64,000 bases of DNA from NCBI GenBank assembly GCA_977020255.1, contig CDROCS010000666.1, positions 62,001 through 126,000 on the forward strand, read 5' to 3'. A program made the position numbers and the translations under genes. Source of the DNA: Obrimoposthia wandeli (Eukaryota). The notes beneath the pieces were generated by a model. It was not told where the DNA came from. It did no database searches and worked only from the letters and a program-made list of their open reading frames with translations. Shown one piece after another: positions 52,345 to 63,082 of this stretch; within the stretch, counting starts at the first letter, position 1; the number at the start of each line of letters is the position of its first letter.

Positions 52345-53556
52345 ATGGAACCCATTTACATCGTAGCGGCAAAGCGTACTCCTATTGGTAGTTTTAACGG
52401 CTCTCTAGCCCCTGTATCGGCACCTGAACTGGGTGCTATTGCCATTCGCAGCGCATTAAATCAATGCCATCTAGATCCCACGCTTGTCGACGAAGTGATT
52501 GTGGGTAACGTATTAAGTGCCGGCATCGGCATGGGGCCAGGCAGACAAGCTGCAATCGCCGCTGGTATTCCCGACACGGTGCCCGCTTATACCCTTAACA
52601 TGATTTGTGGTAGCGGCATGAAAACCGTCATGGATGCGGCTAGCCATATTCGTTCTGGTGATGCTGAAATCATTGTGGCATGTGGTATGGAAAACATGTC
52701 TCAAGCCCCTTTTTTACAGTCTTATCAAATGCGAGCTGGCGTTCGAATGGGTAACCAAACCATTGAAGACAGTATTATTAAAGACGGGCTAACCGATGTG
52801 TTTAATCAATATCACATGGGTATTACTGCTGAAAATATCGCGGAAAAACTCAATATATCGCGAGAAGAACAAGATGCTTTTGCCCTATCTAGCCAAAAAA
52901 ACGCAGCAATAGCATTAGAAAGTCATGGCTTTAAATCTGAAATAGAGCCTGTAAATGTGACTCACCGTCGCAAGACAAATTGCATTGAAAACGATGAATA
53001 CCCAAAAACGAACACCACAGCAGAATCACTCGCTAACTTACGTCCAGCCTTCAAGAAAGACGGAACAGTAACAGCGGGTAATGCATCGGGAATCAATGAT
53101 GGTGCAGCGGCGATTATTCTGGCGTCTAAATCAGCGGTTGAACGTTACCAATTAGAACCCATTGCTGAAATTGTGGGTTACGGCCAAGCGGGTGTTTCAC
53201 CAGATGTAATGGGGCTCGGCCCTGTACCCGCGATTGCAAATGTTCTCGATAAAACCCAATTATCGCTGAGTAACATTGAATACTTTGAATTAAATGAAGC
53301 GTTTGCGGCGCAAGCACTCGGCGTGGTTAAACAATTAGCCGAACAACACGATGTCGACCAACAATGGATATTAGATCGCACCAATCACAACGGTGGTGCC
53401 ATCGCACTTGGGCATCCGTTAGGTGCATCAGGCAACCGTATTCTCGTAAGCCTTATCTATGAATTAGAACGTCAAAACAAAGAGTATGGATTGGCATCGT
53501 TATGTATAGGCGGTGGCATGGGAACAGCCGTTATCGTTCGTCGTTGCTCGAAATAA
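52345..53556 (+). CDS. atoB: Acetyl-CoA acetyltransferase
   Basis: MICGSGMK, NEAFA, GHPLGASG and CIGGGMG. Confidence 0.92.
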   Translation: MEPIYIVAAKRTPIGSFNGSLAPVSAPELGAIAIRSALNQCHLDPTLVDEVIVGNVLSAGIGMGPGRQAAIAAGIPDTVPAYTLNMICGSGMKTVMDAASHIRSGDAEIIVACGMENMSQAPFLQSYQMRAGVRMGNQTIEDSIIKDGLTDVFNQYHMGITAENIAEKLNISREEQDAFALSSQKNAAIALESHGFKSEIEPVNVTHRRKTNCIENDEYPKTNTTAESLANLRPAFKKDGTVTAGNASGINDGAAAIILASKSAVERYQLEPIAEIVGYGQAGVSPDVMGLGPVPAIANVLDKTQLSLSNIEYFELNEAFAAQALGVVKQLAEQHDVDQQWILDRTNHNGGAIALGHPLGASGNRILVSLIYELERQNKEYGLASLCIGGGMGTAVIVRRCSK

Positions 53557-53583
53557 GCCTAAGAATGTAAGAAGGAACACAAC

Positions 53584-54237
53584 ATGAAAAAAATTATTTC
53601 AGCAGAAGCTATTGCCAGCAAACTTCATGACGGTATGACAATCATGATCGGTGGATTCATGGCAAATGGCGCCCCTGAAGGCTTAATTGATATTTTACTT
53701 GAACATAATATCAAAGATATCACCTTGATCACCACCGACACCGGCACTCCTATTACTGGTTCAGGTAGACTTATTTCAGAGCGCCGTATCAAGAAACTGT
53801 TCGCATCGCATGTTGGAACCAACCCAGAAACCGGCAACCAAATGAATGCCGGTGAACTCGATGTTGAGCTAGTACCACAAGGTACATTAGCCGAAAGAAT
53901 TCGTGCAGGAGGCGCAGGCCTCGGTGGCATTCTAACTCCAACAGGCTTAGGCACGCTCGTTGCAGAAAACAAACAGGTTATCACTGTTGATGGTGAAGAT
54001 TTCTTATTAGAAAAGCCCCTTCGTGCTGATTTGGCCTTTATTCGAGGTTCTATTGTCGATACTAAAGGCAATGTGTTTTATAAAAAGACCACTCAGAATT
54101 TCAACCCGTTAATGGCAACCGCGGCCGACTTAGTCATAGTCGAAGCCGAAACGCTCGTTGATGTGGGTCAAATAGAACCAGAATGCGTTCATACTCCAGG
54201 TTTGTTCGTTGATTATGTTTATCAGGGAGGAAAATAA
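53584..54237 (+). CDS. atoD: Acetoacetate CoA-transferase alpha subunit
   Basis: DGMTIMIGGF and PQGTLAERIRAGGAG. Confidence 0.92.
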   Translation: MKKIISAEAIASKLHDGMTIMIGGFMANGAPEGLIDILLEHNIKDITLITTDTGTPITGSGRLISERRIKKLFASHVGTNPETGNQMNAGELDVELVPQGTLAERIRAGGAGLGGILTPTGLGTLVAENKQVITVDGEDFLLEKPLRADLAFIRGSIVDTKGNVFYKKTTQNFNPLMATAADLVIVEAETLVDVGQIEPECVHTPGLFVDYVYQGGK

Positions 54238-54238
54238 T

Positions 54239-54910
54239 ATGGCGCTAGATAAACATCAAATTCGTCGTAATATCGCGTGGCGTGTGGCACAAGAACTGAA
54301 CGATGGTGATGTGGTGAATTTAGGCATCGGCATGCCGTCTCTTGTTGCTAACGAGATCAATTGTGATATTGAATTGATTCTACAATCTGAAAATGGATTA
54401 CTCGGCATTGCTGGCTTAGCTGATATTACCAATACCGACCCTGATTTGGTTAACGCAGGCGGACAACCTATTACCGAAACAGCAGGCGCGAGCTATTTCA
54501 ATAGTGCCGACTCTTTTGCGATTATTCGTGGTGGTCACGTTGATGTAACCGTATTAGGTGCATTGCAGGTCGATGAACAAGGTAATTTAGCCAACTGGAT
54601 TATACCGGGGAAGATGGTTCCCGGCATGGGTGGCGCGATGGATCTTGTAGTGGGTGCAAAGAAAGTGATTGTATCGATGGAGCACACAGCGAAAGGCAAA
54701 CATAAACTATTGAACCACTGCACATTGCCGCTAACAGCCACCAATCAAGTTAATATGATCATCACTGAAATGGGTGTTATCGAAATAACCCCAGAAGGTA
54801 TGCTACTAACAGAAATTGCCCCAGAATATACGGTAGAAGAGGTTCAACAGGCAACCGAAGCGACGTTAATCATTGCTGATAATTTAAAAGTTATTCCCTT
54901 CCCTGAATAA
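54239..54910 (+). CDS. atoA: Acetoacetate CoA-transferase beta subunit
   Basis: NLGIGMP, QSENG (catalytic Glu) and GMGGAMDLV. Confidence 0.92.
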   Translation: MALDKHQIRRNIAWRVAQELNDGDVVNLGIGMPSLVANEINCDIELILQSENGLLGIAGLADITNTDPDLVNAGGQPITETAGASYFNSADSFAIIRGGHVDVTVLGALQVDEQGNLANWIIPGKMVPGMGGAMDLVVGAKKVIVSMEHTAKGKHKLLNHCTLPLTATNQVNMIITEMGVIEITPEGMLLTEIAPEYTVEEVQQATEATLIIADNLKVIPFPE

Positions 54911-54993: not shown

Positions 54994-55023
54994 GAATAGG
55001 TGTCGCACAGCCGACACCTATTC
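54994..55023. terminator. Hairpin between convergent atoA and olsF-like genes
   Basis: GAATAGGTGTCG-n6-CGACACCTATTC, 12-bp perfect stem. Confidence 0.7.
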
Positions 55024-55099: not shown

Positions 55100-56977
55100 T
55101 TACTCATTCGTAATATGCGCTGCCAAATACGCTTTGGCTTGTTCACGCCCCATGTATTTGCCCAAGGTTTTTTCGGGTACTTGCGCCAAGTTCACCACAA
55201 TCAAACCATCTAATGCATCGTTAAATGCAGGGTCGACGTTAAAGCACACCAACTTACCTTTCAACCCAAGATACTGACGCAGTAATACTGGCAAACCACG
55301 ACCATGTTCTAAGCGACTCAACACTTTTGATAATAACTGCACATCACCTAACGCAGACAGCATATCGGTATGCCAGAAGGCCTGCCCGTCACCTTTCAAT
55401 GGCGTGGTAGCATTTACTAATGCCGCTTTGGCGTTGTCATAATGATGAACCGTTAATGTCGATGCCATTAGCTGACGCGCCACTAAACTGTAGTCATTAC
55501 TGATGCTGACAGGGCCAAACAAATGGGTATATTGCGGGTGACGCGAAACAAACGTCGCAATGCCTTTCCATAGCAACAATAACGCACTTAAACTGCGTTG
55601 ATACGGTGCGGCAACCACAGAACGACCTAATTCTATTGATTTACCTAACTGGTTAATAAACGCTTCATCGTAATTAAACAAACTACGTGAATATAACCCG
55701 TCTATGCCTTGTTTCTCGACCAACTCATCCACCAACCCCATACGATAAGCACCCACTAATTCGTGACGGGTGTTATGCCATACAATAAGCTGGTGATAAT
55801 GCGGATCATAACCATCTACATCGCATGCTAACCCCGTGCCTTCACCCACCGCACGAAAACTAATTTCACGTACGCGTCCAATTTCTTGCATCATCATTGG
55901 AATTACGGCAGAACGCACGCAGTACACATCGAAATCCCCTTGGGTTAACAAGTGGCAGTTCGGCTCAAGCAGATCCATTTCTGCTTGCAATAAAGCGGGG
56001 GCAATCGCCGTAATCACGGGTTCAGTATCAGTATCAGTATCAGTATCAGACATTAACTTACTTGCTATCGATTCATAAGCAGCTGACTCATAAACGCCTG
56101 ATTTATTGACCAATGATTGAGTATTGTTATTACCTTGCAGCGGATTCGTCGCACTCAATAAATAGGTATTAAGTCGCAGGTAATTCACCACTTTCTGATC
56201 GCTATCTAACGCTTTCAATTCAGAAAACGGAATCGCATCACCAATGGCAATCGACATGGTTTGATTGTGCTTATTCAGCAACTCACGCCCCAGCAACAAA
56301 GTACGCAGCATCGGGTGAATGGTGCCTGCTTTGTAAAAGGCTTTACTATTGTGACCATCAATAAAGATTGGCACCGTGGTCGCTTGGCTACGTTTAACCA
56401 ATTTAGCCACAGAGCGGCTCCATGCTTTGTCGATCAAGCGGTGTGGCATAGCCTGCGTTTCTTCGGCAGAATCTGACGCGGATTGATAGGTCGACACTTC
56501 GCCTGCCGGAAAAATCAGTAGTAATCCCCCTTCTGCCAAATGCTGATAGGCTTCTCGCATGGCTTTTATATTGGCTTTAATCGCCTCTTTGCCTTCAAAC
56601 ACATCGACGGCGATAAACAACTCGCTGATTTCAGGTAAACGCTTTAAATAATGATTCGCCAACACTTTAATGTCATTACGTACATGCCCTAATAATTCAG
56701 CCAACATTACGCCTTCTATCGCGCCCAGCGGGTGATTCGCCACCACAACCGTTGCGCCATTTAGCGGAACATGATCTAAACTGCCTTTAGTAACTTGATA
56801 CTCAATACCCAACACATCGAGGGTATAACGCATGAATGCATGGGCACTTAGCCCTGCTGGTCGTTGTTGATATAGTGCATCAAGTTGGCTTAGCCCTGTT
56901 GCCCATTCAGCGACAGATTCCCCTAAACCAAAGGGCGTAACGCGCGGTAAACGAAACGGGCTACTTTGCGCATTCAT
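55100..56977 (-). CDS. OlsF-like bifunctional amino-lipid synthase (PlsC-type O-acyltransferase plus OlsB/GNAT N-acyltransferase)
   Basis: VVANHPLGAIEG, FPAGEV; EIGRVREISFR..D.YD..Y, IELGRS and LLRQYL. Confidence 0.85.
   Translation of the reverse strand: MNAQSSPFRLPRVTPFGLGESVAEWATGLSQLDALYQQRPAGLSAHAFMRYTLDVLGIEYQVTKGSLDHVPLNGATVVVANHPLGAIEGVMLAELLGHVRNDIKVLANHYLKRLPEISELFIAVDVFEGKEAIKANIKAMREAYQHLAEGGLLLIFPAGEVSTYQSASDSAEETQAMPHRLIDKAWSRSVAKLVKRSQATTVPIFIDGHNSKAFYKAGTIHPMLRTLLLGRELLNKHNQTMSIAIGDAIPFSELKALDSDQKVVNYLRLNTYLLSATNPLQGNNNTQSLVNKSGVYESAAYESIASKLMSDTDTDTDTEPVITAIAPALLQAEMDLLEPNCHLLTQGDFDVYCVRSAVIPMMMQEIGRVREISFRAVGEGTGLACDVDGYDPHYHQLIVWHNTRHELVGAYRMGLVDELVEKQGIDGLYSRSLFNYDEAFINQLGKSIELGRSVVAAPYQRSLSALLLLWKGIATFVSRHPQYTHLFGPVSISNDYSLVARQLMASTLTVHHYDNAKAALVNATTPLKGDGQAFWHTDMLSALGDVQLLSKVLSRLEHGRGLPVLLRQYLGLKGKLVCFNVDPAFNDALDGLIVVNLAQVPEKTLGKYMGREQAKAYLAAHITNE
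56022..56049. repeat. In-frame hexamer microsatellite (TCAGTA)4
   Basis: Encodes SDTDTDTDTE in the interdomain linker of the OlsF-like protein. Confidence 0.9.
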
Positions 56978-57104
56978 ACAATACCTCCCTTTTCGGTATC
57001 AGTGCCAACAGAGTGCCGAAGATAAAAACAATAAAAAACGAGAGCCCACCCGCGAGTGATAATAATGCGGGGCGTGACGTGCCTGTCTGTGTTGTTATAT
57101 TCAT
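56961..57104 (-). CDS. 47-aa single-TM small protein (below ORF-track cutoff)
   Basis: AAGGA RBS; MNITTQTGTSRPALLSLAGGLSFFIVFIFGTLLALIPKREVLYECAK*; overlaps the olsF-like start. Confidence 0.55.
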   Translation of the reverse strand: MNITTQTGTSRPALLSLAGGLSFFIVFIFGTLLALIPKREVLYECAK

Positions 57105-57231
57105 AAAGTAATCCTTATTTTTTTAGGCATATACGTATCCCTCGCCCCGTGTCGGCACAGCGATTAATAAATGAGGGATGGGTAGCACTTTTATTTACGC
57201 GCTTTTATTTATAAGGCTTTATTCATAGCAG

Positions 57232-57687
57232 TTAATTAGCGAGCAGTATCGGCCAGTTTTTGTCGCCCTTCACGATAAACCCTGCAATATCTTGCTCCCA
57301 ACGTTGCTTAATCGTTTTGTCATAATTCAGATACAATTTAGGCGTATTGTCAGAGCCTTTTACGATAGTCCATTGCTGGGGATCGCCCGGAGCACGGTCG
57401 TTCTTAGCCGCTACAGCCCAAGCACAGAATCCACCGTATTGCGGGGCATATTTCTCAGGATTACTCACAAACAGATCACGATTTTGCTTAGAGGAAAAAT
57501 ACCAATCTGCGCCTTTATATTCGGTAATGTAGGCGCTATTCCCTTTAACGGGTTTGCCCTCGGTGAAATAGGCAACCGTGTCGTAACCATCTAAAGCTTT
57601 ATTACTGAAATATCCAGTATAAATAGCGTCACCTGCCAATACAGACCCACTGACTAGTAATAAAAGTAATCCCATTAATGCTTTCAT
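57232..57687 (-). CDS. Periplasmic YHS-domain protein (Cys form)
   Basis: Signal peptide; ALDGYDTVAYF, F..NPEKYAPQYGGFCAW and LYLNY. Confidence 0.9.
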   Translation of the reverse strand: MKALMGLLLLLVSGSVLAGDAIYTGYFSNKALDGYDTVAYFTEGKPVKGNSAYITEYKGADWYFSSKQNRDLFVSNPEKYAPQYGGFCAWAVAAKNDRAPGDPQQWTIVKGSDNTPKLYLNYDKTIKQRWEQDIAGFIVKGDKNWPILLAN

Positions 57688-57829
57688 GTATTCCCTTTCC
57701 TTTTTTTACCGTTATTCAGCTTATAACCGACAAACATCTTCTCTCATAGAAGATTAAAATAGATGTTCAATACTGGTTCGCTAATGCGTCATGTTTTTCG
57801 ACTTTTTCTCGAATAGTCTTTTGAATGTT

Positions 57830-58648
57830 CTAAATAATGAGTTCTGCTGGTGCAGTAATCATCTTCCTGACTAATAAGAACGAGGACGTCGGGGTTTTAT
57901 TGCCATTTATTTCTCTTTTTTCGCAATTTTTATCGTCACAAAGCGATCCCGCGAGATAATTCATGGTTAATAACTGCGGGGTCACTTCAATGTGCGTGAA
58001 ACTAACGGTATGCGCATCGGCGCGGTGCATACAGGCAGAAAGGTGGCTGTGGCAACCATTGCGTTTAAACGCTAACAATTCGTCTCTCGGTACATGGCTG
58101 GCATGAAACGCACGCAACGATTCAGCCGTCACACCGTGTTCAACGTAGCGCAGATATTCCCCTTGGCGGTGTGCCGTCACATTGTGCAAATCGACCCCCG
58201 ACGACACCATCGGTGCTTGCGGTGTGATGGTCAAAAGTGAAATACCGTTCCAGCACATACCCAGTACTTCCCCGTGTGATTGCGTTAACGTCGGATCAAA
58301 CAGCATTAAACTGAAAGGCGCATAATGCAGTAAGGGCACCGTATCCAACATGGCTAATGCTTCATGTGCGGTGCGGCAATTGGCGAGCTGTTTGATCAAT
58401 AACCCGCGACTGATTAGCGGGTGTTGCGGTATTTTCCCTTGATAGAAATTCAACAAACACAGCGATAAACCGTGCTCGTTCATTGCAATCCAACTGCCAC
58501 CACCCACAGGGTCTACCGGCATCACAAATTCAGTGCCCGTGTTATCGAAACGAGTTGGCGGTAAGGCTTCTTGTCGCCCCTTCTGCTCATCACGGTTAAA
58601 ATAAATTTGATAGCCCGAGGACGTTAACATCCAAGTTGCCGTACACAT
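57830..58648 (-). CDS. NRDE/TANGO2-family Ntn-fold protein
   Basis: MCT N-terminus (Cys2), FNRDE, GGSWIAMN and SRG. Confidence 0.9.
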   Translation of the reverse strand: MCTATWMLTSSGYQIYFNRDEQKGRQEALPPTRFDNTGTEFVMPVDPVGGGSWIAMNEHGLSLCLLNFYQGKIPQHPLISRGLLIKQLANCRTAHEALAMLDTVPLLHYAPFSLMLFDPTLTQSHGEVLGMCWNGISLLTITPQAPMVSSGVDLHNVTAHRQGEYLRYVEHGVTAESLRAFHASHVPRDELLAFKRNGCHSHLSACMHRADAHTVSFTHIEVTPQLLTMNYLAGSLCDDKNCEKREINGNKTPTSSFLLVRKMITAPAELII

Positions 58649-59232
58649 TATGCCTGCCCTCGTAAGTAACTCGCTGTCGCGGGTGCTATACCAAAATCAG
58701 TACTCACATTGGCATTGCAATATAATACCGACACGCGGATTAACGCATAATGGTGGATGGCATGCGCGGCCACAAAAATCAATTCACGCGCCATGCTCGA
58801 CGTTAACTGCTCAGAATATTGTTGATGCAACGACACTTCTGTTTTTACTTCAACATGGCGGTAAATATCGTCACTGCGTAAAGCCAGTAACCACTGTTTA
58901 ATGTGTTCTAATTCGCGTAAAGCGGTTGTACGGCATGCTTCAACGGGTGCCCCACGGCGGCGAAAATTATAATCGATGATCCCTGTTTTTTGTTCATTCA
59001 TCAGCGAGAAATACAAATCAAGGCTATGGCGAAAATGCTCACCAATACTGCTGTTTACATACGGCGCTGCTACGTGCTGATAATCTTCATCACTTAAGGT
59101 GTCTAATAGCGCAATGCCTTGTTCAATCACATCCATATTGCCTGTTACACAAGAATCTAATGCGTGCACATCCGATGCCAAAGGCGAAATTCTGGGGCTA
59201 CTTTGCGTTGCTGAGTTCGCTGATATTGTCAT
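58648..59232 (-). CDS. DinB/YfiT-superfamily protein
   Basis: SIGEHFRH, YNFRRRG and RELIFVAAHAIHH His triad. Confidence 0.88.
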   Translation of the reverse strand: MTISANSATQSSPRISPLASDVHALDSCVTGNMDVIEQGIALLDTLSDEDYQHVAAPYVNSSIGEHFRHSLDLYFSLMNEQKTGIIDYNFRRRGAPVEACRTTALRELEHIKQWLLALRSDDIYRHVEVKTEVSLHQQYSEQLTSSMARELIFVAAHAIHHYALIRVSVLYCNANVSTDFGIAPATASYLRGQA

Positions 59233-59268
59233 AATTACCTCTTTTTATTTATTCAATTACAACGAGTT

Positions 59269-60474
59269 CTAATCTGTCGCGGGATAATGCTCCACCAAGG
59301 CTTTCTCGGCACGCCACGCTTTATACAATGCCCACAGCGAGGGGGTTTTATGGCCCGCTTTTCGTTGCAAATCACCTATTTCATACAAGGTGCGATACTG
59401 AACCAACAAGGTGCTAAAAATCTCTTTCAGTGGCGTATTCCGGTCCCAAATATGGGCGGCTTCACTGCTGGCCCCATTTACTTCAAGAATAGTCAATTTT
59501 TCGCCCTTCATCAGGCTCTCTATATTATGGAACTTCACATCTAACCGACCAAAATGAAAACCCGGTAAATCATCAAAAATATAATCCAAACGTTCAGCTA
59601 ACTGTTCTGTGATGTATTGATTACCATTGCGGAAAATACAACCACGGCTGTGACTGCCCGCAAACGCCAAACGGAAATGACACCCTTCGGTTAGCACCCA
59701 ATCTAATTTGTCTTGATGGCGCGGTAAATACAGGTGACGAAGCTGCCCTGCTCGGGGGTCATTTTCGATTAATTGCGCCAACGTACTCGTACCATCGCCA
59801 ACCACAAACGGGGTGTATTTCAAGGTAATAGACGTTACACGGCCTTTCATCTCGCCGGGGTAACGAATATAAAACACCCCTGCTTCGGCATCGTATGGCG
59901 CTTTTTCTTGCAATAAATAACGGGCACCCAACGGGAAAGTGCGAATGTATTCCATCACTCCTGCTTCGTCTTCAAGCAGTTTTACCCCGACGCCACGACA
60001 CCCCATATCTGGTTTCGCGACGATAGGAAAATCGATGCCTTCATCTTGCATCGCCAGCAACGCATCGTTCAACTGCATAAATTCAGGCATATCGGTACGC
60101 GTTAATGTGACAAACGGCGATATCCATTTTTTCGCCTCTGACCCCGCCAGCGCTAAAATGTCATTTTTCGATTCACCGACCATGCCACTTAAGGCAATGC
60201 CAGGGTTGGCAATTAACGGCAACGCGAAATTGCGGTATTTCACCCCATGCCACAGGCTTTGCATCACAACAGGCGTGTAGAAAAACCATGCAGGCCAGAA
60301 CTCGTAACGCGACACACTCGCCCCCGTGTCTGGTTCCATTTTTGGCATACCGGCATTCACAGGATTAACCGATTCAATGATCGACAACTGAGGAGGATGC
60401 GAGGCCGCTCGTTCTGAAATAAGCTCAGGCTCATGCGAAATCGGTGAATCCTGCAATACTGACTTAACTGTCAT
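59269..60474 (-). CDS. ATP-grasp ligase (D-Ala-D-Ala-ligase-like fold)
   Basis: FPIVAKPDMGCRGVGV, LLQE, GRLDVKF and LEVNG. Confidence 0.88.
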   Translation of the reverse strand: MTVKSVLQDSPISHEPELISERAASHPPQLSIIESVNPVNAGMPKMEPDTGASVSRYEFWPAWFFYTPVVMQSLWHGVKYRNFALPLIANPGIALSGMVGESKNDILALAGSEAKKWISPFVTLTRTDMPEFMQLNDALLAMQDEGIDFPIVAKPDMGCRGVGVKLLEDEAGVMEYIRTFPLGARYLLQEKAPYDAEAGVFYIRYPGEMKGRVTSITLKYTPFVVGDGTSTLAQLIENDPRAGQLRHLYLPRHQDKLDWVLTEGCHFRLAFAGSHSRGCIFRNGNQYITEQLAERLDYIFDDLPGFHFGRLDVKFHNIESLMKGEKLTILEVNGASSEAAHIWDRNTPLKEIFSTLLVQYRTLYEIGDLQRKAGHKTPSLWALYKAWRAEKALVEHYPATD

Positions 60475-60562
60475 GGCTTTTAGCCTCTCTTCCCTAAAAT
60501 TAAATATGCTTATCGTTATAAGTGTTATTACGATAACTGTTTCTTACATAGCCAAGTAACGA

Positions 60563-61168
60563 CTATGAAAATGACGGCTGTTTTAATCGTCGCTGTAGTC
60601 GGCGTTTTACCGTACGGTTCGAGATAATCAATATCAGCCCTGCAATCGGAATCAACCACCATTTGTATGCGCTGGCTTGTATCCACGCTTGGCTACCAAG
60701 CTGATAAACCAAGGTAAACACCACGCTTGTCCATACTGCGGTGGCGGCAAGTACTGCGGTCAAAAATCGTAATGGGGGCACTCTAAAAATACCGCATAAG
60801 GCATAGCCCAAGGTGCGTAAGCCTGGAATAAAACGAATAATGAAGATATTGGTTGCAGTGTTACACTGTAACCGACGGCGCACACTGCGCATACTTTGCT
60901 TGGTTAGTATCGCGTAACGAAAGCCCCGCCAATGTGACGACCACGCCCCAAGGTAATACAAGGCTAAATCGCCCGTCGCAATCCCAACAAAGACGGCCAA
61001 TACCGCGAACGGCAACGATAACGAACCATTGGCGGCTAACACGGCAGCCGCAACAATCGCGACATCTTCAAGCAAATACGACATCAGAATAATGGCTAAA
61101 AATACGGTAAACGGAGCATCACCAGCCCCAAGTTGAGTTACCCAATTCATAATCGCCTGTTCTGTCAT
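60563..61168 (-). CDS. DedA/VTT-family membrane protein
   Basis: LLED, GIATGDLALYYLG and RFIPGLR. Confidence 0.9.
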   Translation of the reverse strand: MTEQAIMNWVTQLGAGDAPFTVFLAIILMSYLLEDVAIVAAAVLAANGSLSLPFAVLAVFVGIATGDLALYYLGAWSSHWRGFRYAILTKQSMRSVRRRLQCNTATNIFIIRFIPGLRTLGYALCGIFRVPPLRFLTAVLAATAVWTSVVFTLVYQLGSQAWIQASAYKWWLIPIAGLILIISNRTVKRRLQRRLKQPSFS

Positions 61169-61473
61169 CTTACTGCTCCTGCTTATTCACTTTTCATCCG
61201 CCATTCCAACGGCCTTATCTACAAGACCTACGCGCCAAGTAAAAAATTTCGTTTAAATTAAAAAATTTATCAAAATAAAGATGTTAAGGGTGTCATCTTG
61301 AATATAGCGTTATTGGTATCACGCGTATTATCTAAACACTTCAATCAAGCCGTTCTTAGCGCAGCGTTTTTTGGTCTGTTTTTTTGGAAGGGATGTTCGA
61401 CAACAATATTTCATAGGTCATTGTTAATATGATTTTATGCGATCAACCTTTAAATCATAAAAAATTTGAATTG

Positions 61474-61574
61474 ATAATATGATCGACATCATTGCCGTTG
61501 ATATTAGCTGTAACTTACAGGCCTATTTTGTATTAATTACAATATATTACGAGCTAGAATATTCATCAGTAAGC
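61474..61574. repeat. Dispersed intergenic repeat, copy 1
   Basis: ATAATATGATC..TGATATTAG..AGGC..TTTTGTATT..ATATTACGAGCTAGAAT..TCAGTAAGC. Confidence 0.75.
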
Positions 61575-61691
61575 ATACGTACTATTACAAGTATCGCGCT
61601 ATGTCGGCCTTAAGTGGTTGTGCTATTACTGTGAAATATACAACCTTAGATCGTTGAATATAATGTAGTGTTATTAAGAGAGCTTATCGAT

Positions 61692-62348
61692 ATGTTTAGC
61701 AAAACCGTTGTTGGTTCGTTTTTGTATGCGAAGTCTTACAAAGAAGCATTATTTCGGGCAACTATTTTACCAATAACTATTTCATTAGTTTTGGAGTTTG
61801 CCTTTAGTTACATTAACAGCCAGCCTCTTCATTATTTGAATAACGTTTTTCTCACAGTTTTGAATGCAATTGTTGCTATAAATGTTCATAACATCGTTCT
61901 GCATGGTGTAGATTCTGTACCTAAATGGGGAAGGTTTAAGTTTGGTAAAGTTGAGCTCTGGTTTATTGGCCATTACATTTGCTTGGCGGCTGCATTTATA
62001 GCGATAACGTTTATGACTCGTTTTTTAGGTTCAGCATTAATTTTAATTGTAGCGGCTTTTGGTGTAGTCGCGTGTCGCCTATCTCTTGTGTTTCCAGCAA
62101 TTGCTATAGGTAAAGGTGTTTCCTTTCCGTATGCATGGCACCTAAGTTCAGGGAAAACACTATATATGTTTAGTGTGGTTGCAATATTTCCTATTAGTTT
62201 GAGTTTAGTCCTAATGCCATTACAAACATTTGGAATACCACAAGTGGTGACTAGTATCCTGAGCTATTTGGTTACTATTATCACAGTAACGTCACTTTCG
62301 TTAGCGTACAAGTTGCTAACTGAAGGTGAACTAAGCCAAGGAAACTAA
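61692..62348 (+). CDS. Hypothetical multi-TM membrane protein, cassette-like
   Basis: About six hydrophobic helices; AT-rich. Confidence 0.75.
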   Translation: MFSKTVVGSFLYAKSYKEALFRATILPITISLVLEFAFSYINSQPLHYLNNVFLTVLNAIVAINVHNIVLHGVDSVPKWGRFKFGKVELWFIGHYICLAAAFIAITFMTRFLGSALILIVAAFGVVACRLSLVFPAIAIGKGVSFPYAWHLSSGKTLYMFSVVAIFPISLSLVLMPLQTFGIPQVVTSILSYLVTIITVTSLSLAYKLLTEGELSQGN

Positions 62349-62611: not shown

Positions 62612-63082
62612 ATGAACGAACAAACAGAAAGCAAATTTGAATATGTCGGGTTTTGGGCTCGAGTCGGTGCAACACTAATAGATACCATTATTATACTTAT
62701 GATAAGTGCCCCTCTTATGTACATGTTTTATGGTGATTTATATCTGTATTCAGATGATTTTGTACTAGGGTTCGCAGATGTAATCGTGAATTATATATTC
62801 CCTTTAGTAGCCGTTCTTATTTTTTGGACTTATAAATCAGCAACGCCAGGGAAAATGGCCATTAAAGCAATTATTGTCGACGCAGATACTGGAAAACGAC
62901 CAACAACGAAACAATATATTATTAGATATTTTGGATATTTTATTTCAATTCTTCCACTTTGCTTAGGGCTGATGTGGGTAGGTTGGGATAGTAAGAAACA
63001 AGGCTGGCACGACAAACTCGCAAAAACAGTCGTTATTCGTCCGCAAAATCGCGGGGTAGAAAGCGTTAAATTCAACGTATAG
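62612..63082 (+). CDS. RDD-family membrane protein
   Basis: YVGFWARVGATLID, ATPGKM and KQGWHDKLAKTVV. Confidence 0.92.
   Translation: MNEQTESKFEYVGFWARVGATLIDTIIILMISAPLMYMFYGDLYLYSDDFVLGFADVIVNYIFPLVAVLIFWTYKSATPGKMAIKAIIVDADTGKRPTTKQYIIRYFGYFISILPLCLGLMWVGWDSKKQGWHDKLAKTVVIRPQNRGVESVKFNV

Follow-up and report, generated by a model that had tools for sequence, protein, structure and literature searches.

An accessory gene module conserved with ornithine lipid synthases in three bacterial phyla is probably an undescribed lipid-remodelling system

A gene cluster in a 64,000-nucleotide stretch of contig CDROCS010000666.1 (hereafter the window, to which all positions refer), part of the Obrimoposthia wandeli assembly GCA_977020255.1, joins an ornithine lipid (OL) synthase of the OlsF type to an accessory module that encodes a DedA membrane protein, an orphan ATP-grasp enzyme, a DinB-like protein, a TANGO2/NRDE-family protein, and a YHS-domain protein. 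All genes of the cluster lie on the minus strand and read from 61168 to 55100. The accessory module is conserved, together with OlsF or with split OlsB and OlsA genes, in Gammaproteobacteria, Acidobacteriota, and Bacteroidota. The presence of one gene set in three bacterial phyla suggests that the cluster is probably a lipid-remodelling system not described before. Our more specific reading, held tentatively and with a little less than even confidence, is that the module remodels an aminolipid head group and exports the product. An earlier reading of the same DNA, made from the letters alone and called here the original prediction, had proposed a distinctive gene set around an aminolipid synthase at 55100-61168. 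The named genes are indeed found there, co-oriented, and the same set recurs across genera, orders, and phyla.

Conservation was followed through the ATP-grasp protein; a word search gave 2104 matches when the window protein was the query and 2763 when the query was a distant family member. The protein is encoded in 133 of 301 Vibrionaceae species genomes, in 10 of 401 sampled gammaproteobacterial genomes, and in 59 of 251 sampled Bacteroidota genomes. Linkage was counted in 40 Vibrionaceae loci and 20 Bacteroidota loci fetched for the purpose. Physical linkage served as the measure, since in these two groups OL-type synthases are probably too widespread for genome-wide co-occurrence to tell much. 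In the Vibrionaceae set, DedA lies beside the ATP-grasp gene in 39 loci, DinB and NRDE together in 37, YHS in 33, an OlsF-like gene in 31, and a DoxX-like gene in 16. The order DedA, ATP-grasp, DinB, NRDE is kept in 37 of the 40; a single rearranged locus (L057) departs from the order seen in the window, and the full cluster order is kept in Photobacterium, Vibrio, V. mimicus, and Marinomonas. Nine Vibrionaceae loci show no OlsF-like gene, one of them because of a contig end, and the eight module-bearing Vibrionaceae genomes without OlsF in cis all have an OlsF elsewhere. Every module-bearing genome tested, in fact, carried an OL-type synthase. A synthase gene usually unlinked in other genomes was the outcome that the original prediction had named as speaking against it; linkage in cis is instead the common state in Vibrionaceae, and OlsB/OlsA genes take the place of OlsF elsewhere.

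At least five gene orders show the module linked to OlsF or to OlsB plus OlsA, whether the linkage arose anew or was retained. Three loci (L007, L008, and the L057 locus already mentioned) read ATP-grasp, OlsF, DinB, NRDE. Two others, L009 and the Arenicella xantha locus L061, read NRDE, ATP-grasp, OlsB-like, OlsA-like, YHS. On a Terriglobales contig (L062), divergent OlsA/OlsB genes stand beside the series YHS, a 163-residue protein, DinB, DedA, NRDE, ATP-grasp, while contig L060 reads YHS, a 144-residue protein, DinB, NRDE, and then a single gene in which DedA is fused to ATP-grasp. At L010 and L014 the ATP-grasp gene is paired with one or two stand-alone GNATs of family PF13444. The YHS gene is found in cis in the Arenicella, Terriglobales, and Bacteroidota loci as well as in Vibrionaceae. 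Fusions of DedA to ATP-grasp were found by word search in at least seven proteins (P0192, P0196, P0198, P0200, P0206, P0214, and P0238) and again in Bacteroidota, where 8 of the 20 loci (L063-L070) read OlsB-like, OlsA-like, DinB (detected by tblastn in five of the eight), and a triple fusion of 810-865 residues (for example L063:6896-9316) consisting of about 290 N-terminal residues, DedA, and ATP-grasp. The N-terminal 290 residues or so of these fusions have no Pfam match; an NRDE domain was considered for this position and rejected, the hhalign comparison being negative (probability 0.05). No other member of the gene set is as well conserved as the ATP-grasp protein, which in places is fused to DedA. 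Conservation over three phyla in so many gene orders, with gene fusions besides, goes beyond any chance model, and we take it as strong evidence, drawn from genome comparison, that the genes of the module are functionally coupled.

Most of the remaining Bacteroidota loci read YHS, DoxX, DinB, NRDE, ATP-grasp, with no acyltransferase nearby. In five of them (L073, L075, L076, L079, and L082) the series YHS, DoxX_2, DinB, NRDE, ATP-grasp is followed by a gene for a protein of about 210 residues and adjoins genes for an AhpC/TSA peroxiredoxin and a Crp-family regulator; the identity of these two neighbors was checked against Pfam in L073, and open reading frames (ORFs) of the same size occupy the same positions in L075 and L076. 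In a further Bacteroidota locus, L080, a YceI lipid-binding protein gene is inserted in the module.

In amino-acid sequence the window proteins show 88-93% identity to their counterparts in Photobacterium frigidiphilum, P. indicum, and P. profundum. The contig is bacterial, from a symbiont or a contaminant, inside an assembly of eukaryotic size (1.35 Gb, 6912 contigs). By gene order and sequence similarity, the cluster is the Photobacterium version of the VCA0651-VCA0646 locus of Vibrio cholerae, where the order is DedA, ATP-grasp, DinB, NRDE, YHS, OlsF (L020) and where the ATP-grasp protein is 62% identical to that of the window. Gene order, with DedA assigned by position, and primer matches together identify VCA0651 as DedA, VCA0650 as ATP-grasp, VCA0649 as the DinB-like protein, VCA0648 as NRDE, VCA0647 as YHS, and VCA0646 as OlsF. 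In genomes G682 and G593 the cloning primer VCA0646F has an exact match where the OlsF-like ORF begins, which places it 1.77 kb downstream of the ATP-grasp match, and the published primer 300U_649_rev, which lies 51 nt into VCA0649, falls 51 nt into the V. cholerae DinB-like ORF. The V. cholerae primers matched V. mimicus imperfectly; the exact matches were found within the Vibrio genus set. The two versions of the locus differ in that V. cholerae has two OlsFs, Photobacterium only the one in the cluster, and in that the DoxX-like gene was not detected in V. cholerae, whereas Photobacterium has a remnant or an intact copy.

Part of this locus has been studied in V. cholerae. VCA0646, the second OlsF of that species, is enough by itself to give ornithine lipid in E. 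coli, is required for OL at low salinity, and influences polymyxin susceptibility (PMC12186959). The same work describes it as "the last gene of a putative operon VCA0649-VCA0646" and assigns it a low-salt-inducible promoter of its own, with little promoter activity in a fragment 5' of VCA0649. A study from the Bassler laboratory finds vca0646-0649 to be a co-transcribed, HapR-activated operon "of unknown function", and reports cell death on joint overexpression of vca0646 and vca0647 but with neither singly (bioRxiv 10.1101/2024.09.23.614608). The papers on vca0646-0649 treat four genes, three of them without function, and do not mention VCA0650 or VCA0651. In RNA-seq of an iurV mutant, VCA0650-1, VCA0648-9, and VCA0646-7 all fall together (PMC7600106). 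This shared response and the weak promoter 5' of VCA0649 suggest that the transcription unit probably starts at the DedA gene, two genes upstream of the published operon.

The synthase gene of the window (55100..56977) encodes 625 residues with the two-domain OlsF architecture, PF19576 at residues 46-276 (65.6 bits) and PF13444 at residues 370-470 (73.6 bits), which it shares with the OlsF enzymes of Serratia proteamaculans and Flavobacterium johnsoniae. In the OlsB/OlsA pathway the corresponding OlsB-like and OlsA-like genes are split, and it is such split genes that adjoin the module in other phyla. At 60% identity and in the same gene context, the window protein is the syntenic orthologue of VCA0646, a proven OL synthase; the type of synthase in this cluster, with a characterized orthologue, is thus already known. 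The window protein scores 394 bits against the OlsF equivalog model NF052615, under its 620-bit cut-off. The two experimentally proven V. cholerae OlsFs also fall under that cut-off, at 434 and 418 bits, so the window score is no argument against OL synthesis, and a different amino-acid substrate, considered as an explanation of the low score, was rejected on the same ground. We class the window enzyme and both V. cholerae enzymes as a divergent Vibrionaceae clade of OlsF. One gammaproteobacterial genome, G172, has a canonical OlsF (G172:C7:35388-37103) that, unlike the window protein, passes the equivalog cut-off with 794 bits, and in addition a module-linked divergent OlsF (361 bits, in L008), so that its two OlsFs parallel those of V. 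cholerae. The interdomain linker of the window protein, at about residues 300-325, is a low-complexity repeat of Thr, Asp, Glu, Ser, and His, and linker length varies: the P. frigidiphilum protein has 640 residues (L001:11898-13820).

The original prediction had allowed that the ATP-grasp enzyme builds the substrate of the synthase; since VCA0646 by itself gives ordinary OL in E. coli, the ATP-grasp protein is not needed for that, and this part of the prediction falls.

The ATP-grasp gene (59269..60474) encodes a putative carboxylate-amine ligase of 401 residues that has no Pfam match and only faint similarity to cyanophycin synthetases and RimK. An AlphaFold2 model with a predicted local distance difference test (pLDDT) score of 86.8 carries the assignment further. 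In Foldseek searches with this model the best match is the G domain of cyanophycin synthetase 1 (7txv, E 2.6e-11), followed by GshF and D-alanine-D-alanine ligase (Ddl), with a Foldseek probability of 1.00 for all three. A profile search of the PDB likewise ranks CphA2/CphA1 first (E 2.5e-11). CphA1/CphA2, RimK, and GshB/GshF are the closest enzymes by fold and profile, and they share with the window protein the residues that bind ATP and Mg, at only 17-20% identity and a TM-score of about 0.45. Across 19 sequences, K154, R310, D312, E331, and N333 are invariant. Judged from the predicted fold and these positions, the protein is a member of the ATP-grasp superfamily with conserved ATP-Mg ligands. 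Unlike the CphA, RimK, and GshB ligases, it is a single-domain protein with an aromatic N-terminal helix of its own (or a DedA fusion). This helix, EFWPxWxFYxP, is conserved ahead of the catalytic core. Its mean hydropathy is just 0.1-0.4, on which ground a true transmembrane helix was rejected, and a helix so weakly hydrophobic is probably interfacial. The G domain of CphA, RimK, and GshB all work on an N-acylated amino acid or peptide, whose alpha-carboxylate they phosphorylate before adding an amine.

Many members of the family are named D-alanine-D-alanine ligases in NCBI and UniRef, VCA0650 is so listed in PMC7600106, and Ddl is among the fold matches. On that reading the enzyme would be a Ddl and the cluster a chance neighborhood of unrelated genes. 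We consider that extremely improbable. The sequence bears next to no resemblance to Ddl (E 0.57 against Ddl in the PDB), no Ddl model of Pfam or NCBIfam matched, and the cyanophycin synthetases come first in profile and fold searches alike; synteny across three phyla, together with the gene fusions, refutes a chance neighborhood.

Upstream of the ATP-grasp gene, the first gene of the cluster (60563..61168) encodes a DedA/VTT membrane protein of 201 residues (PF09335, 54.4 bits, cut-off 33.9). At 34 bits against UptA models with a cut-off of 250, it is not an UptA equivalog. Downstream lies the gene for the predicted DinB_2-like four-helix metalloprotein (58648..59232, 194 residues), which scores just under the Pfam threshold (PF12867, 22.1 bits, cut-off 24.8). 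Of its orthologues, that of L061 scores above the threshold (25.3 bits) and that of L062 below it (23.0), and the profile matches the PDB entry 3dka, "DinB-like" (E 0.004). Ten sequences from three phyla share H66, H69, H157, H160, and H161, R91 and R93, and two Glu residues, E150 among them. The His triad that had been expected of a DinB-type metalloenzyme is thus conserved, and the five invariant His residues are candidate metal ligands. The DinB fold is typical of thiol transferases.

The TANGO2/NRDE-family protein (57830..58648, 272 residues; PF05742, 28.5 bits, cut-off 22.6) is predicted to be a Cys protein of the N-terminal nucleophile (Ntn) fold. It starts Met-Cys and carries the NRDE motif, and in eight orthologues M1-C2, R19-D20-E21, N67, S80-R81-G82, and R209 are invariant, while N18 differs in one. 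To our knowledge no activity is known for any member of this family. The profile matches human TANGO2 (8sv7, E 3.4e-6), with which the window protein shares PF05742, Cys2, and the NRDE motif; the identity, about 25-30%, is confined to the N-terminal half. The Cys-Ntn class also includes the lipid amidases acid ceramidase, NAAA, and bile-salt hydrolase (PMC13044924). TANGO2 itself has been argued to be a Cys-Ntn hydrolase whose pocket fits fatty-acid amides larger than 500 Da (PMC13044924) and to need its NRDE motif for acyl-CoA binding (PMC11867700, PMC13044924). OL is a fatty-acid amide of the type proposed for that pocket. The sole bacterial TANGO2 homologue studied, HtpA of Shewanella (SO0126), has a different gene context; the role assigned to it, haem trafficking, has since been contested for the homologues in eukaryotes.

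The last accessory gene that is intact in the window (57232..57687) encodes a YHS-domain protein of 151 residues, predicted to be periplasmic (PF04945, 51.8 bits). To judge from its score of 156.9 bits (cut-off 70), it belongs to the Cys/Sec "(seleno)protein" family NF041384. Its N-terminal leader is hydrophobic and by eye resembles a signal peptide, and its translation includes a GGFCAW motif. Its conserved Cys presumably stands at the position taken by Cys or selenocysteine (Sec) in the family.

Between the YHS and OlsF genes the window retains only a 47-residue ORF (56961..57104), which DNA alignment against intact genes identifies as the N-terminal stump of a DoxX/MauE-like gene for a multi-transmembrane protein of about 183 residues. 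An internal, frameshifting deletion has removed 421 bp, with the junction at 57017/57016. Of the seven genes originally counted, therefore, six are intact, and the "small transmembrane" gene is a broken stump. Both P. frigidiphilum and P. profundum have an intact copy, and the P. indicum gene (L002:11195-11840) carries a different and shorter internal deletion. Decay of the gene in the window and in P. indicum was independent. The intact copies of Marinomonas and V. mimicus show weak MauE/DoxX similarity, and the Bacteroidota orthologue scores above the DoxX_2 cut-off (28.7 bits against 26.3). By tblastn the gene was undetected in V. cholerae and in 24 of the 40 Vibrionaceae loci.

These assignments can be joined into one mechanism. 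The ATP-grasp enzyme would sit at the cytoplasmic face of the membrane, anchored by its aromatic N-terminal helix or by the DedA fusion. There it would take OL or lyso-OL, phosphorylate its free alpha-carboxylate, and join an amine or an amino acid to it. DedA would flip the amidated product to the outer leaflet. The TANGO2/NRDE protein and the DinB-like metalloenzyme, with which it would be translationally coupled, would hydrolyse or exchange the lipid amide, in editing, turnover, or recycling, and the YHS protein and DoxX would act on the lipid, or sense it, on the periplasmic side. A ligase that amidates the head group is favored because the relatives of the ATP-grasp enzyme extend the alpha-carboxylates of N-acyl amino acids, and OL and lyso-OL offer such a carboxylate at the membrane. 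The chemistry has precedents among orphan activities. Cerilipin, made by Gluconobacter cerinus, is OL with taurine on the carboxyl of ornithine; the transfer is ATP-dependent, and its gene has not been identified (PMC12971839). Ser-Gly and Orn-Ser-Gly lipids also exist, with glycine lipid as an intermediate of Ser-Gly lipid and no ligase named (PMC12971839). Both are products of the kind expected from an ATP-grasp enzyme beside an OL synthase, although no lipid of either kind has been reported from Vibrionaceae. MprF systems, in which a head-group enzyme is coupled to a flippase, often with a hydrolase and with cationic-peptide phenotypes, follow the same logic, by analogy only: the families are unrelated, and MprF uses aminoacyl-tRNA, not ATP-grasp chemistry. 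A still more specific version of the proposal, in which this ATP-grasp family would supply the missing ATP-dependent head-group ligases, of the kind behind cerilipin and aminolipids extended by peptides, that feed DedA, with TANGO2/NRDE as a Cys-Ntn amidase or transferase on N-acyl-amino-acid lipids, we offer as speculative and, taken as a whole, rather doubtful.

The same parts might instead handle plain OL and make no new lipid. DedA would then flip OL for transport to the outer membrane, the YHS protein and DoxX would receive it, NRDE and DinB would degrade OL or lyso-OL as conditions changed, and the ATP-grasp enzyme would serve in a supporting role such as salvage or re-ligation of a hydrolysis product. 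OL is the only such lipid seen in V. cholerae by thin-layer chromatography (TLC), and two reviews of aminolipids mention neither an OL flippase nor an OL hydrolase (PMC11631085, PMC12971839). The lipid amidases among the Cys-Ntn hydrolases suit this account as well, and the toxicity of overexpressed OlsF plus YHS is what overdriven OL trafficking would be expected to cause. The ATP-grasp enzyme is what makes us doubt it. This most conserved member of the set is invariant, keeps its catalytic residues intact, and is physically fused to DedA in some organisms, and it is hard to see why a system of transport and degradation alone should require an ATP-dependent ligase. The plain-OL alternative seems to us unlikely, though still a serious rival.

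The gene neighborhood in Bacteroidota and the thiol chemistry typical of the DinB fold suggest a further possibility, a system that deals with redox, with thiols, or with a small molecule. Here the ATP-grasp enzyme would build a soluble peptide-like metabolite, the DinB-like protein would be a thiol-dependent metalloenzyme, the Ntn protein would trim an amide, and DedA would export the product; the YHS protein, through its Cys/Sec position, and DoxX would form a periplasmic quinone-linked redox pair, and the module would share envelope-stress regulation with the OL synthase without acting on OL. The trio of ligase, DinB, and Cys-Ntn protein is reminiscent of the logic of EgtA/EgtB/EgtC. NF041384 does have selenocysteine variants, the membrane partner does match DoxX_2 and MauE, and the Bacteroidota loci of the second type, with no acyltransferase in cis, are those found beside AhpC/TSA and the Crp regulator. 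In the iurV mutant, moreover, VCA0646-0651 fall along with msrB, trx2, grx, and copG (PMC7600106). The peroxiredoxin and regulator neighbors and the thiol and copper co-variation hint at a redox or thiol role rather than one in lipid metabolism. Against it stand the repeated linkage to OlsF or OlsB plus OlsA in at least five gene orders and three phyla, the OL-type synthase in every module-bearing genome tested, the genetic interaction of OlsF with YHS (bioRxiv 10.1101/2024.09.23.614608), and the properties of human TANGO2, which binds acyl-CoA and has a pocket suited to fatty-acid amides (PMC11867700, PMC13044924). On balance a redox or thiol system seems to us unlikely, but it deserves to be kept in view.

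Several facts weigh against head-group remodelling and export, in addition to the redox-linked neighbors and co-variation just described. VCA0646 alone yields ordinary OL in E. coli (PMC12186959). Under low-salt conditions, the label of [14C]ornithine given to wild-type V. cholerae appeared only in OL and at the origin of one-dimensional TLC (PMC12186959), a result that speaks, though weakly, against a modified lipid being abundant in that setting; lipid mass spectrometry in that work covered only E. coli strains with single expressed genes, and V. cholerae lipids were followed by TLC. The salt-responsive promoter of olsF means that the synthase can be expressed without the upstream genes. In 12 of the 20 Bacteroidota loci and in 8 of the 39 complete Vibrionaceae loci the module has no synthase in cis. 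The N-terminal helix of the ATP-grasp enzyme is weakly hydrophobic for a membrane anchor, and vca0648 and vca0649 are dispensable for the sole reported phenotype (bioRxiv 10.1101/2024.09.23.614608). What stands of the original prediction after this comparison is a conserved, coupled gene set around an aminolipid synthase; an ATP-grasp enzyme needed for the substrate and an intact seventh gene do not.

No characterized pathway with this gene set was known to the original prediction, and none turned up in the literature searched. There, no paper treats the gene set as a unit or gives the accessory genes a function, and searches for work on ATP-grasp, NRDE, DinB, and Ntn in combination, or on unusual aminolipids in Marinomonas, Photobacterium, or Aliivibrio, found nothing relevant. 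The module as a unit, its spread across phyla, the DedA::ATP-grasp fusions, and the inclusion of VCA0650 and VCA0651 in the locus thus appear to be undescribed in that literature. OL affects stress tolerance, polymyxin susceptibility, and host recognition, and the module, with its fusion of ligase and DedA, is a concrete candidate for the missing steps of OL flipping, trafficking, carboxyl modification, and degradation. The ATP-dependent transfer of taurine was described in 1976-78 and is still without a gene. For V. cholerae, the cluster offers a biochemical frame for the quorum-sensing and cell-death phenotype of vca0646-0649. It also places a TANGO2-family protein in a lipid-amide context in tractable bacteria, which should be useful for a human disease protein of disputed function; if the speculative version of the proposal is true, it would provide the first physiological substrate class for a family that includes human TANGO2.

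The genes of the cluster are tightly packed. In the order from 61168 to 55100, the intergenic distances are 88, 36, -1, 142, 127, and -17 nt, and the overlaps noted originally between dinB and the NRDE gene (-1 nt) and between the small ORF and olsF (-17 nt) are both real. The cluster ends, as had been noticed, at a strong hairpin (54994..55023), which has a perfect 12-bp stem and a 6-nt loop followed by a T-rich tail and resembles a bidirectional intrinsic terminator. The cluster had also been described as more GC-rich than its flanks. With a guanine-plus-cytosine (GC) fraction of 0.458, against a window mean of 0.407, it is richer than the right flank (0.355), but hardly differs from the adjacent genes of the left flank (0.448). 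Directly beyond the hairpin lie convergent genes for a thiolase and two CoA_trans subunits, atoB/atoDA-like (52345-54910), of which there was no sign in the related loci checked; a query with the 403-residue thiolase matched one distant locus only. On the other side, the ORF map and GC profile delimit an AT-rich divergent intergenic region 5' of DedA (61169..61667), within which the main promoter of the cluster is presumed to lie. The divergent ORF that follows (61668-62348, 226 residues) has no Pfam match; P. frigidiphilum and P. indicum have counterparts of 90-93% identity in the corresponding position. Next to it, in the AT-rich region, is a gene for an RDD-family protein (62612-63082).

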